From: Pavona decussata
Taxonomy: Eukaryota
Direction of reading: 5' to 3'
Length of the DNA stretch: 64,000 nt
Assembly (NCBI GenBank): GCA_977016875.1
Contig: CDRNST010000091.1
Coordinates: 62,001-126,000, forward strand
Under the pieces are notes generated by a model. It was not told the DNA's origin, ran no database searches, and worked only from the letters and a program-made list of their open reading frames with translations. Shown piece by piece: positions 20,845 to 55,771 of the stretch (position 1 is the first letter of the stretch; each line of letters starts with the position of its first letter). The position numbers were made by a program, and so were the translations under genes.

Positions 20845-23800
20845 TTAATTCGATGAACTTTCTGTCGTTCCATAAAAGCTTACTGTTAAATCAATCGAGG
20901 ACAATGATTCGCTTTTTAGCGAAAGCTTACTGAAGTCGTAAATATGGCCTGCACTTGTTGCACAATGGTCACTCACTTGTAATCTCAATGTTTTCAACGA
21001 GTCGCTTTGAGTCAAAATATTACAAAGTTCGGGTAACCAGTCTTCGCTTACTTCATTGCAGATGTTGACGGTCAGATTGAATGTCGTTATTGATGTGTTG
21101 TCTTCCAAACCATTAACCAGGCAGTCCAGCCACTCGTAATCGGGGATACTGTACTGATTCAGTATCAGAGTGAGTGTAGTCAGTGACTTGTTTGCTGCTA
21201 AAGCTTCCTTTAAACCATATTCGTATAAGGTGACTCCTCCAGGGTCTTCAAAGTTGTTAATGGTCAGAGTGAGTACACGTAACGATGAATTGTCCTCCAA
21301 ACCTCTAAAAAGGTCTGCTCCCCACTCTTGGTAACACCTACTATAGTTGTTGATTGTCAGACTTAATGCAGAAATCGATATATCAGCAAAGGCATCGCCC
21401 AGACTGTATTTCCAACCCATCAGGAAAGCAGTCTCCTCCAGCGAGATATACTCGTGTCTAAAGTTGTTGACTGTAAGATTGAGCGAAGTCAGTGATGCGT
21501 TTTGAGTCAGAACATCACGAAAACAGCTTTTCCAGTCTACGAGCTCTTCATATTTGATTTTAAGACTGTGCTCATTTCTTCCGCTGTCTTTAACTGGAGA
21601 ATTATTGACAGAGCAATCTAGCCCACTAAACAATTCATCTGAAACTACACACGAGTCGTTCACACTTAACAGAACTGCCGGGTTGTTTTGTGACATTTCT
21701 TGAAGGACATCCTTTCCCTTTAAGCTCACCTCCCCCCAGACGTTCAAAGTAAGGCAAGGCAGAGCCTGAGATGGCTTAAAACGTCTTGCTATACAATCAG
21801 CAAAATCATCAGTTAATCTGCTGTGGACATTCAAAGTTAGACTAGACAGCGGGAATTGTGCAAATAAATCACATAGGCCTTCACTCCCTTCCAAACTCAA
21901 CTCACCCCAAAGGTTTACGGTCAAGTGCTGTTTTGGAAAAAGCTCATTCGTAAGGACAAAAGGACGTAGAGAGGCCACATGATTGGCTGTCACTTTGCTG
22001 CCAGTGTCTGGGTGAAAATCAAGGACAACTGGTGCCTTCTTTGAGAAACGCAGATTCTTCAAAACGGTGTGCCAGTTTTCAGGCTTCTGTCCATAGACGA
22101 ACGCTCTGAAACAATTCAATGAACGATTTTTTATAAGACCTCTTTCTAACAAACTGGCACCAGAAATACTCAGATTTCCATTAACTCGAAGATCAAGAGA
22201 GTTTAAAAAGGTTGGACCTTTAAGTCCTTTACTAACTGCAGCAGCTAACGAATCCTGCATGTCACCACAAATAATTAGAGACAGAGAAGTTAGAGATTTG
22301 TTTGTAAAAAGCTTTTCTAAGGCCTCTTTTGCAGTTTCACTCATTGAACCATAAATCTTCAGAACAACAGACGTTAGTGGTGTAACAGCAGATAACCCTT
22401 CTTCAAGAGCAGCGGCCCAAGCCTCACGCCACTCTTCCGACAATGCAAATGTCACTTTTCTTAAGGTCTTGCTTGCAGCTAAACCTTTACCAATGATAGA
22501 AGCCGCATCACGAGGTATGTCGTTTGACACTGTAAGGATAAACTCCAGTAAACTGGGGTTTGCAGCTAACCCATCAAACAGAACATTGGCTACTTTTGTT
22601 GTCAACTCACGGTTAGAGAAGCTTAGAGTCGTAACGTGCGAACAGGATATGAGGAGATCTGAGACAATTGCCATTTCGTCCTCGTCAGGATGGTCAAAAT
22701 TAGTCACATTAAGTTTAACAGGCTGCTGTAAAGTTGAGAAGCTTTGACAGGCCTTCAAAACATTAACAAAGTACCGGCAATTCCAGTGAAACCCTTCATC
22801 ATGTGGGTTAATCGAGATCTCCAGTGGAAAAGGTTTGAAAGAACAAAGAGTAGCCGCCATTCGTTCAGCATTTCCACTTTCAACAAAGCTCTCAATGAAG
22901 AAAGTTGCTTCCTGATAACTGATATCGGGCCAGCCTACCCATCGAAAGCTGCACAGCTTCTCGCCAATCTGAGTAAATAGAAGGATTGCTTCCTCACCTA
23001 GCAAACCAGCTACAAATAGAAATACTTGTGGATATTTTCCTACCAAATCATCATAGTCTAAAAGCTCAAACACGTTGAACTTGTTTTCTCGTAACTTGTG
23101 CGCAATATATGATGCAGCCAAGTATTCTTGAAAAGACTTATGAAGAAAGCAGTATTCATGTTGTGGATTTAATCTCTTCAAACTTTCCTCCTTGTAAAGA
23201 AAACCTAGTCCACGAGCTACCAACTTGTCATTTTTCCTTTCCAATTCCTTCAATTCGTTTTCACGAAAACTATGACGATCGTTCAGCAAGCACTCCCAAG
23301 CTAGCTTTCCAAGTGCAAGGATGTCCTTTTCAAATTCTTTCTCTAAAACTCTGTCATCTTCATTGGCTTTTCGACCGTGTTTTGTACAATATCTTCTCAA
23401 AAGGCACCGGACAATAATTTGGTAAAGCTCAGTACGGGAAGATGGGAGTTTTCCTGCATAGTCTTCATAAATAACACACAGAAGAAGTAGATTTAGTGGA
23501 TTGTTTCGGAGGGCATGTAATAAGGTGTTTTCTTTTATTTCTTCTATCAGTCCCTCTCCTTTTGTACAATGTTCTGGATCAACACTCTTAAAATGTTTCC
23601 TGATATACTCGAAAGCATCGCTTTCAGTGAATCCTTCGATCTGTCAAAGAACGTCAAAAACAAACTCCTTTCTCACGTCAATTCCTTTCTCTTGTCGACA
23701 AGTGGCCAGGACATAACAGAATGGCAGAATTCTTCTGTGAAGAAGTTCATCCACGTAATGCTTTGACTTTTCAGGAAGTTCGTCCAGACCGTCCAAAATT

Positions 23801-24281
23801 ATTAAAATTCTCTCCTGATTATGAATGTCCCTCAAGAAATCCAACAGCTTTTCTGTGGTATTTTCGTCAATATCCTTTGGCAGAAGTTGTTCTATGATGG
23901 CTTCTTTGATATTTCCATCGATGTCTCGGCATTTTAACAACAGCACAAGTTCAAAACTGGGAGAGGTAAACGTTGTTGCAGTGCTTTTATTTGCCCAGTC
24001 ATGAGCAACTTTAAGGCAAAAAGTCGTTTTACCAATTCCGGGACTTCCCTCAACAAGCGTCATGGCATCTTCACCTTTGTTAAGAGCCCTGAAGATGTCA
24101 TACACGTTCACCTCACAACCTTCTGCTCGAACGCCACCTTTTGGTCTTGAAATTATTTTCAATCTCGTGTAGACGTCTTCAAGAGGCAATTGAATAGTGT
24201 TGTCCCAAAGAAGCGGCCTTAAGTGAGCGCGTCTATTGTACTCTGCTCTGAGCAACTTCTCAACAACTGAGTTGTCGGTAC
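20845..24281 (-). CDS. Gene A last exon: NACHT NTPase, helical/winged-helix domains and RI-like LRRs (interrupted by TGA at 23644-23646)
   Basis: Walker A GSPGIGKT, Walker B ILDGLDE, NPL motif, FLHKSFQEYLAA winged-helix motif, NxSLxxLxL repeats. ORFs 23644-24255 and 20845-23400 are in the same frame with no other stop between them; acceptor ttttttgtag. Confidence 0.9.
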
Positions 24282-24499
24282 CTACAAAAAAGTGACAATT
24301 GTTTCTTTCAGCTGATCCTCAGGTCTTGCAAGACGAAATTATCACTAACCCTAAGATAAGAGATTTTTAGTTTCAATTGTTGCACCATTCCCCGTTAGTA
24401 CACCAACCCACTCCCCTCCCAAACACCTGCAGTTTTGCTGACTATACATTCCATATAAAAAGGAAAAAGTTATCTAGATTTTTTCAACTCAGTTCAATG

Positions 24500-24790
24500 T
24501 CTATTGTAAAGAGAGAACGACGTTTTTCAGTTTGCAGACCATGTTTCGGCATGTCAGTCAAATGCCATCGTCAGTTACAATAACGATACATACGGAAAGA
24601 GGTGTTACACGGACAACGACAGATTACCACGTCTAACGTGTTGAATAAGAATACGCATTATCCACTTAATGTGCATTGCTTCCTTCAGTTTGAGTTTGAA
24701 ATTAGTGTAGACAGAATCTACAACAGTAAAACAATCCGAGAGGGACGCAGCGTGAAACCTACGGAGGCACCATCTAACTAACGAAAGGGG
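24500..24790 (-). mobile_element. Penelope-like element 3' fragment
   Basis: Translates CFTVVDSVYTNFKLKLKEAMHIKW (C-terminus of the GIY-YIG region), followed by a hammerhead-like motif. Confidence 0.65.
24532..24580 (-). ncRNA. Minimal type I hammerhead ribozyme-like motif
   Basis: Minus strand TTGTAA CTGACGA TGGCAT TTGACTGAC ATGCC GAAAC ATG GTC TGCAA: CUGANGA and GAAA core, stem II, GUC site; stem I imperfect. Confidence 0.55.
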
Positions 24791-54009: not shown

Positions 54010-54096
54010 CTTGTTGAACCTCCATAACAAGTGAAGGGTCCTTGTTGGCCTCAACGATTACCATGTGCCTTCTATCCTCGTCACTGGCATTGCTCC
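54010..54096 (-). CDS. Gene B linker exon 3
   Basis: 87 nt, phase 1-1, ttccccag acceptor, gtatga donor; paralog of 26650-26564. Confidence 0.8.
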
Positions 54097-54537
54097 CTGG
54101 GGAAAAAAACTATATATAGAAACATAGGTCCAACCATTTTTTTTTTCTTATCCTTCCAGCAGCATCACTCAAAATGAGAAGTACCTTATCAGTGCCACTA
54201 CCTCAGTGGAAAAACACCAACACATCCATTAACAATGGAATCTATTTTGTAACTGTCATAATTTGGACACAACTGGTATCAATTTACAGGTACAGTGTTT
54301 TACTGTTGTGATCCTCACTTATGCTGCTTGGAAGCCAGAAATCTTGTGGTACATGATAGACTTCTTACTAAATGCAGCTTAAGGAAACAATGGTTTCCTC
54401 TTGAACTGGGCCAATTACTTTTGAAAAAATAAAATAAAAACAGCGAACAACCAATTAAATGTTAAACACCATGTACTAATCACAGTTACGTAATGGTTTC
54501 AGGACAATGAAAAATCATTTCAAAAGAAGAAACTTAC

Positions 54538-55771
54538 TTTGTGTAATGTTCAGCATCCTTTCTACAAGTCTGCCACACTGTTCCTCCCAACTGTATTTCT
54601 GTGCATATTTTCCACAAAGATCTTTGGTCTCTCCAAGCCGTACATCCCTGTTTTTTTCACAAACAGCCCTGATTGCCTTGGCCCACTCTTTAGGATCTTC
54701 TGAATTCACGACACTGTAAGAACCATACAGCACATTCTTTAAAGCTTCTCCAAGACCCGAGTTACCACTGACAAGTACAGGAAGACCAGCAGATAAAGCT
54801 TCAAGAGCAGCCAGCCCAAAGCCTTCAGTTCTTGAGGGCATAATAGCAAGATCTGCCTCAGAAAACTGTTGAGCTAGCTGCTCTCTTTCTTTAAAACTAC
54901 GTACAGTTAGTTGAGTAGGAGCAATGCCTTCCTTGAGTAACATTTGTGTGACTTTCTCTTCTTCTCCACTTGGTGCACCAACAAACACAAGTTTGTAGGG
55001 CTGTGGCATGTCCTTTAACTCAGCAATTGCCCTTGCAGCAATATCATATCCCTTCAGGTGAAAGTCTTCGCTATCTCCACGCCCAAACACTAAAACACGA
55101 AATGTTCTTCTTTCAACGGTGACCTGCTTCACATCAGCAAACTCAGAGAAGACTCCTGGGGTAAGGTTGAGAACATCTTGGTCCTTTCCACAGGAACGGA
55201 GGTAACAAGAGAAAGCTTCAGCCAGCTTGGGTCCAACTGCTACGACTTGATCAGCTAATTCACAGAGTTTCACCTCTGCCTGGTGCTTTTTCTCACCTTT
55301 GGAAATGGGGTCTGCATAGCTCTTGAACATTCCAAGTTCTTCAGGGTCAGTATGAACAACCTGAATCCATTTACAATGGCCATGAACACGTTTTATATGG
55401 GGTGCTTGGCGACCAAGATGGACTCCATGTCCTATCACACAGTCCATGACGTGATCTTTTGGAATAGTGGCCAACCAGTCAATTGGATCATAACCAGGCA
55501 TCTCCTCGGCTTCAATAAGATGGACATTGTGACTAGCAGAGACCCTTTTATCCTCTTCGCTACACTGAGGGAGATACATACTGACCTCAACATTGTGGTG
55601 TTTTGCCAACTGAATGGCAAGCTCTCTGTTAATGGTTGACAAGCCTCCTTTTGTAGATCGCCATTCACTACTCAAAAGAGTAACTTTCAGTGTCCTGTTG
55701 GAAGCCAAAGTTGACCCACTTTCTAGGCATTCCTGTGATGTAGAGGCTGACGTGCTAGGCAATGAGGAATC
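54538..55771 (-). CDS. Gene B exon 2: GT4 glycosyltransferase domain
   Basis: Same GT4 motifs as gene A; about 92% aa identity by manual count (~34 differences in ~410 aa); splice sites conserved. Confidence 0.9.

Follow-up and report, generated by a model that had tools for sequence, protein, structure and literature searches.

Does a reef coral encode an immune-like receptor in which a sugar-transferring enzyme stands in front of the NACHT and leucine-rich repeat (LRR) domains, and are these parts made as one protein? The question is raised by a stretch of 64,000 nucleotides from the Pavona decussata scleractinian assembly (602 Mb), positions 62001-126000 of contig CDRNST010000091.1 (C91); this stretch is the window, and coordinates given without a contig name refer to it. 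All long open reading frames (ORFs) of the ORF list between 20.8 and 55.8 kb lie on the minus strand, and they carry two copies (A and B) of a tandemly arrayed gene in which a family 4 glycosyltransferase (GT4) exon is followed by a NACHT-LRR exon. Our best explanation, with a probability of about 0.6, is an NLR-like array of the coral in which a gene encodes a single GT4-linker-NACHT-LRR protein, with the GT4 domain as its output. The gene identity taken alone, GT4-NACHT-LRR, is very probable; that the enzyme would be an effector activated by oligomerisation is argued from analogy and is a tentative proposal.

Each exon was searched and modelled separately, and protein totals are summed from exon lengths and phases. 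Paralog comparisons used copies A to D and part of a copy E, all taken out of the array, with A and B lying within the window. The predicted exons of these two copies are as follows.

55771-54538, minus strand: copy B exon 2, 1234 nt (411 codons plus 1 base), the entire GT4 domain; acceptor TTTTAG, donor GTAAGT
54096-54010, minus strand: copy B exon 3, micro-exon of 87 nt, phase 1 to phase 1; AG/GT kept in paralogs A-D, open in the needed frame
52624-52496, minus strand: copy B exon 4, micro-exon of 129 nt, phase 1 to phase 1; AG/GT kept in A-D, frame open
51797-48256, minus strand: copy B exon 5, 3542 nt, with pre-NACHT segment, NACHT, helical domains, LRR and stop; intact frame
~51100-51576, minus strand: NACHT within copy B exon 5
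48259-50115, minus strand: LRR solenoid of ~20 repeats within copy B exon 5
30881-30861, minus strand: copy A exon 1 candidate, 21 nt, ATG plus 6 codons (MSRLTIK); phase-0 donor GTAAC, block conserved in four paralogs
28269-27033, minus strand: copy A exon 2, 1237 nt, GT4 domain; PF20706 match, 91% amino acid identity to copy B
26650-26564, minus strand: copy A exon 3, micro-exon of 87 nt, phase 1; conserved splice sites, frame open
25974-25864, minus strand: copy A exon 4, micro-exon of 111 nt, phase 1; conserved splice sites, frame open
24281-20845, minus strand: copy A exon 5, 3437 nt, NACHT-LRR with one in-frame TGA; 57% amino acid identity to copy B

The ORFs at 26905-28260 (copy A) and 54515-55762 (copy B) match the Pfam family PF20706, "Family 4 glycosyltransferase in conflict systems", at E values of 6.7e-86 and 2.4e-86, scoring 289.1 and 290.6 bits, where the cut-off is 26, over model positions 3 to 384/385 of 385. 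Both match Glycos_transf_1 as well, and together with the NACHT matches given below this is in line with the domain assignment of the initial annotation. The structure predicted for the glycosyltransferase (GT) domain by AlphaFold from an 84-sequence alignment is of high confidence (predicted local distance difference test, pLDDT, 93.9; predicted template modelling score 0.90), and its nearest solved folds are MshA and BshA (template modelling, TM, scores of 0.71-0.79), followed by archaeal glycogen synthase, sucrose-phosphate synthase, GlgM and WaaG. G42-G43, H140 of the VVHT motif, R231, K240, E316 and E324 are kept in both A and B and are the majority residues in the family, G42-G43 and H140 being conserved in 64-71 of its 84 members. 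In sequence and profile alignments the His aligns to the HT of MshA and the Lys to its KG, while E316/E324 align to the EX7E of MshA, sucrose-phosphate synthase and P. abyssi glycogen synthase. The ratio of nonsynonymous to synonymous substitution rates (dN/dS) of the GT domain among four paralogs is 0.15-0.28, which denotes purifying selection. The initial annotation had described a catalytically intact GT4 domain with its GG motif, the His of VVHT, GR..KG and EX7E, and all of these were found in both GT domains; as far as sequence, fold model and dN/dS can tell, the domain looks like a competent retaining GT-B enzyme that is selectively maintained.

For the GT part, the nearest named proteins belong to Montipora and Acropora, the best-matching named GT sequences being acroporid; for NACHT they belong to Stylophora, Desmophyllum and Porites. 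Identities to named coral models are 64-75% for GT and ~53-60% for the NACHT region. Among the relatives outside the cnidarians are one Nocardia protein of 2,733 aa and one protein from amphioxus.

The second long exon has the features of an NLR. The ORFs at 23644-24255 and 48256-51936 match NACHT PF05729 at E values of 4.4e-17 for copy A, where the ORF is shortened by a stop, and 7.8e-23 for copy B; Walker A (GSPGIGKTT) and Walker B (LIILDGLDE) motifs are present in copies A to D, and the NACHT module of copy B has NLRP6, NLRC4 and NLRP3 as its matches in the PDB over residues 109-442. The C-terminal part repeats in sequence with a unit of ~30 residues of the type NTSLxxLTLxV, and its model (46 homologs, pLDDT 75.8) is an alternating strand/helix solenoid of ~20 units, for which Foldseek returned NLRP14, NLRP5, NLRP2, ribonuclease inhibitor, NLRP3 and NLRC4 with a probability of 1.00. 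By this model the C-terminus is a divergent LRR solenoid. The dN/dS is 0.3 for NACHT and 0.42-0.60 for the LRR, and since the LRR is the fastest-evolving part of the gene, a role as the sensor fits it.

Are the two long exons joined? Exon limits were set from the alignment of the inter-ORF regions of A and B together with motif location. In both copies a polypyrimidine-AG acceptor precedes each exon and a GT donor follows it. The first base of the GT exon, in phase 0, comes right after an in-frame TAG that belongs to the acceptor, and the exon ends in phase 1; the micro-exon lengths are all divisible by three, and the last exon adds the other two bases of the split codon. Acceptors and donors are all kept across the four paralogs, the sole length change being an in-frame indel of 18 nt in exon 4, and the A/B similarity 5' of the NACHT exon breaks off in the alignment precisely at the acceptor AG. 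The linkage of the ORFs through two small phase-1 exons, as proposed in the initial annotation, agrees with these conserved AG/GT sites and consistent phases in four paralogs.

The 5' end needed a further exon. In the GT exon no in-frame Met occurs before codon 65 (copy B) or codon 91 (copy A), within the first Rossmann half, so that the start must be supplied by a coding exon further upstream. Alignment of four copies distal to the satellite that fills the first intron gave a candidate that encodes MSRLTIK, with GTAAC or GTAGC as its phase-0 donor. A 26-mer spanning it occurs in the window at 30856-30881 and 3196-3221, and did not occur in shuffled sequences; genome-wide there are 21 occurrences, all on the minus strand, 16 of them on C91 between 32 and 610 kb and 5 on the contig C289. 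Those that were checked lie 2.6-16 kb upstream of PF20706 exons, at array spacing, and that of copy B lies beyond the window at C91:133615-133640. We infer from this conservation that the 21-nt block is the first coding exon. A repeated "MW" candidate, obtained with a regular expression demanding a GT[AG]AG donor, was an artefact, the donor of the real candidate being GTAAC. Adding exon 1 brings the predicted protein of B to 1,670 aa and that of A to 1,630 aa, within the size range given beforehand (~1630-1670 aa).

Between the enzyme and the NACHT domain the two micro-exons and the beginning of the last exon form a low-complexity linker of ~145 aa. The exon 4 peptide (52496-52624; 25864-25974) is rich in Ser, Thr and Pro and holds two conserved basic clusters, KGKRP and PKQ[RP]KL; a basic pattern GKRP ... 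K(K)Q(R)K is common to exon 4 of this coral and the Montipora RefSeq linker. One may speculate from these motifs that the clusters act as a bipartite nuclear-localisation-like signal or belong to a phospho-regulated linker.

A number of observations weigh against the reading of one GT4-bearing receptor. The Pfam LRR models did not match the last ~620 residues even at an E value of 5, and the PADLOC defence models matched neither the GT nor the NACHT-LRR part. In Smith-Waterman comparisons with shuffles, exon 4 showed marginal similarity to the Montipora RefSeq linker (z 2.6-3.7) and exon 3 showed none, and BLASTP gave no match between the micro-exon peptides and that linker. The GT frame of copy B meets a stop 8 codons beyond the donor, which would permit a GT-only product through intron retention. 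Finally, a stop codon in copy A and a frameshift in copy C show that part of the array is decaying.

The stop shortly after the GT donor is also the kind of observation expected if GT and NACHT-LRR were separate neighbouring genes, or mostly separate transcripts, and the fusion an over-reading of splice-like sites. Many GT models in the databases are indeed GT-only, with ~400-600 aa; in copy B an ATG lies in the NACHT frame 46 codons before the acceptor; and, when 20 GT4 loci were sampled from other contigs, a related NACHT was found within 8.5 kb at only one, the other 19 having none. Yet three introns keep their phase in each of four paralogs, with the lone indel in frame, and the GT exon by itself lacks a usable start. 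The upstream ATG of copy B is not conserved, because in copy A the corresponding frame is shut by a stop 12 codons before the acceptor, and it is at the acceptor AG itself that the similarity of the two copies ends. Moreover, an HMMER search with the GT exon brought up long homologs, and in three RefSeq models from three acroporid species Pfam places a GT4-conflict domain and then NACHT in one protein: XP_068751416 of Montipora capricornis (1,762 aa; GT4 at 38-405, NACHT at 582-738), XP_068672425 of M. foliosa, with NACHT and LRR_6, and XP_015764075 of Acropora digitifera. We therefore regard separate genes as quite improbable and retain the fused GT4-linker-NACHT-LRR protein as the probable product.

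The gene is repeated over a long distance. Counted by the exon 1 marker, the tandem array has ~16 copies over ~600 kb (C91:32-610 kb), with at least 5 consecutive copies on C91 spaced at 28-34 kb. Besides A and B, two further copies entered the comparisons:

3221-3201, minus strand: copy C exon 1, exact 26-mer match; the other exons precede the window
C91:47257-59665, outside the window: copy C, with its GT exon at C91:58457-59665
C91:18061-25360, outside the window: copy D, intact

Within the window, tblastn found two GT exons and two NACHT-LRR exons, and no third GT or NACHT exon. The initial annotation had counted at least two copies between 20845 and 55771 together with 5' exons of a third. 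The exon sets of A and B support the first count, although B is the only one with an intact frame in the window; for what is probably the third copy meant there, exon 1 is indeed present with its satellite-bearing intron, but it stands alone and lies at 3201-3221, outside that interval.

The copies differ in their state. B and D are open throughout, their last exons by themselves running over more than 1,150 codons. Copy A carries a TGA at 23644-23646 in NACHT, between Walker B and the remainder of the domain, where B, C and D have TTA; this is the single stop in an exon 5 otherwise open across 1,144 codons, and its product is predicted to end after ~697 aa. Judged by its sequence, copy A is a recent nonsense allele or a pseudogene. 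Copy C has 7.6 kb between its GT and NACHT exons, against 2.7 kb in A and B, and its reading frame is lost beyond codon 529 of the final exon, a point at which identity to B falls from 97% to 68%. Judged by the linker and NACHT parts, D is the partner of A and C that of B, a pattern suggesting that a two-gene unit was duplicated. The synonymous divergence (dS) between A and B climbs about five-fold from 5' to 3' (GT 0.19, NACHT 0.53, LRR 1.0), and this gradient suggests that the 5' part, around the satellite, has been homogenised between copies. The array is one of birth-and-death evolution.

Could the members in the window then be non-functional relics of a lineage-specific expansion? The nonsense codon of A, the frameshift of C and a young copia element in intron 1 of B would fit such a view, but the length of the open last exons of B and D, a dN/dS well under 1 in all parts of the gene and the limitation of the damage in A to one base make it very improbable.

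The array is not the only place where this enzyme occurs. At least 205 PF20706 candidate exons are found in the genome, and at six GT4 loci on other contigs (L010, L014, L015, L023, L028 and L029) the downstream ORFs on the same strand carry different partner domains: PNP_UDP_1, a TRADD-like N domain (L015), NPHP3_N with WD40, ankyrin repeats and protein kinase. Since so many partner domains follow GT4 exons, GT4 appears as a mobile N-terminal module, of which GT-NACHT-LRR is one subfamily. A generic module that precedes many unrelated partners would also suit a different function, in which GT4 serves as a decoy or binding module integrated into the receptor to bait pathogen factors, or else as a constitutive enzyme tethered to an NLR. 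A decoy, however, need not keep its chemistry, whereas all six catalytic residues are retained here at a dN/dS of 0.15-0.28. In addition, the N-terminal position is usually that of the output in animal NLRs, and in bacterial STAND proteins the terminal position holds the effector. We give the decoy or tethered enzyme a small chance and continue with GT4 as the output of the receptor.

Under that reading, the five coding exons would encode one cytosolic protein of ~1,650 aa that starts with a short leader and runs through a retaining glycosyltransferase of GT-B fold and GT4-conflict type, the linker and a NACHT ATPase to ~20 divergent leucine-rich repeats. By analogy with NLRs, plant TIR-NLRs and bacterial STAND proteins, the LRR would sense a ligand and NACHT would oligomerise, thus clustering the N-terminal GT4 domains; the clustered GT4 domains would then be the output, moving a sugar from a nucleoside diphosphate (NDP) sugar to a target, which may be a macromolecule of the invader or the host, or a small molecule. 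GT4 also includes protein O-GlcNAc transferases such as GtfA, and for this reason a macromolecular target would be at least as likely as a small one.

An activated receptor might instead make a glycosylated small-molecule messenger or drain the NDP-sugar pool, much as TIR domains consume NAD+. Both options, like activation through LRR-triggered oligomerisation, had been put forward in the initial annotation and are analogies. The intact catalytic residues are compatible with this, and the nearest folds, MshA and BshA (TM 0.71-0.79), are UDP-GlcNAc transferases with small-molecule acceptors, which lends it weak support. The coral domain shares, however, only 17-20% identity with MshA and BshA, too low for the acceptor to be inferred, and no GT4 enzyme is known to synthesise a messenger or to deplete NDP-sugars by hydrolysis. 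Modification of invader molecules is the option preferred in the published proposal (PMC8195603). Messenger synthesis or depletion seems unlikely, and slightly more so the complete scenario of a coral NLR with a switched GT4 output of bacterial conflict-system origin, whose glycosylated signal or NDP-sugar collapse would be a sugar counterpart of TIR and NAD+.

How does the locus compare with systems already described? In Acropora, proteins with a glycosyl-transferase-group-1 domain, a central NACHT and LRR form clusters on one chromosome, and GT-TPR and GT-ankyrin clusters exist as well (PMC12314368, 2025; TPR, tetratricopeptide repeat). The association of GT with NACHT is also noted, with an earlier A. 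digitifera NLR survey cited for it, in PMC10236652 (as its reference 53) and PMC8260672. The present locus resembles the Acropora genes in domain order, in tandem clustering in fast-evolving regions and in occurring alongside GT-TPR and GT-ankyrin relatives. What sets its subfamily apart is a conserved first exon of 7 codons, the satellite in the first intron and the shortness of the linker. For A. digitifera, Kaur, Iyer, Burroughs and Aravind (eLife 2021, PMC8195603) reported more than 500 GT4 paralogs, to which the closest relatives are found in bacterial conflict systems; the same study described bacterial GT4 domains fused to STAND NTPases, NACHT among them, as well as lateral transfer to metazoans, and predicted GT4 to be an effector that modifies invader molecules. 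GT4 is likewise listed among the effector domains in the bacterial NACHT paper.

The GT domain of the locus matches the model of this GT4-conflict family over its full length. In bacteria, GT4 is often C-terminal to the NTPase, whereas here it is N-terminal, and the metazoan architecture stressed in PMC8195603 is GT4-TRADD-N-LRR, against GT4-NACHT-LRR here. TRADD-N (PF20694) was matched in none of the GT or NACHT-LRR ORFs of the window, in a scan that left out the micro-exons, which encode only 28 and 42 (in copy A 36) whole codons, and a GT4-TRADD-N-LRR architecture was rejected for the locus on that result. Vertebrate NLRs such as NLRP proteins, NLRC4 and NLRC3 share the NACHT alignment and the LRR solenoid matches, but their N-terminus is a death-fold PYD or CARD instead of an enzyme, and the LRR of the locus is too divergent for Pfam. 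With plant TIR-NLRs and bacterial NACHT/Avs proteins the locus shares a logic of sensor repeats, STAND switch and terminal catalytic output, although their effectors have no sequence relationship to the coral GT4. MshA and BshA, retaining GT4 UDP-GlcNAc transferases, share the GT-B fold and the HT/KG/EX7E alignment, yet they are stand-alone metabolic enzymes.

Architecture, clustering and the idea of GT4 as an effector are therefore already published, and the locus adds a further member and not a new kind of system. The view of the initial annotation that GT-domain NLRs had been noted in coral surveys while their biochemistry was uncharacterised agrees with all four papers (PMC12314368, PMC10236652, PMC8260672 and PMC8195603), and no experimental characterisation of coral GT-NACHT-LRR proteins was found in the literature. 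The enzyme effector is less novel than it had supposed, GT4 as a STAND/NLR effector laterally acquired by corals having been set out in PMC8195603.

The first intron, between the 21-nt exon 1 and the GT exon, is filled in every array member by an 80-bp satellite that is G-rich on the plus strand (GC skew +0.15 to +0.37). In the window this satellite and the element that interrupts it are placed as follows.

28820-30756: satellite of copy A intron 1, period 80, with 14.4 copies at 28820-29978 by Tandem Repeats Finder and more units at 30487-30756
56320-63843: copy B intron 1, partial, with satellite at 56320-57384 and 62118-63827, split by a copia-type element
57467-62115, plus strand, antisense to copy B: copia-type long terminal repeat (LTR) retrotransposon with gag, an integrase remnant and RVT_2
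1-3100: satellite of copy C intron 1

The copia insertion is young, as its 256-bp LTRs are 99.2% identical. A tRNA-like sequence lies at 31585-31658 on the plus strand, just upstream of the exon 1 candidate of copy A, with an anticodon given by ARAGORN as undetermined, and a second such stretch at ~31100-31180 on the minus strand is conserved in copies A, B and D; both are probably remnants of tRNA-derived short interspersed elements. Between the array members there are tandem repeats with periods of 190-308 bp, at 14908-15816 and 45325-45938, and related units occur at equivalent sites of other copies.

As a genomic observation, the locus repeats what was found for Acropora and in the GT4-conflict analysis. 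What it supplies is an exon-level model, an intact copy B beside a natural nonsense copy A, and defined catalytic residues, in a group of animals that hold hundreds of GT4-bearing immune-like genes. Should GT4 prove to be a true switched effector, the use of enzymes rather than death folds as outputs, known from plant TIR-NLRs and bacterial STAND proteins, would extend to animal NLRs, and glycosylation chemistry would join the known repertoire of immune effectors.

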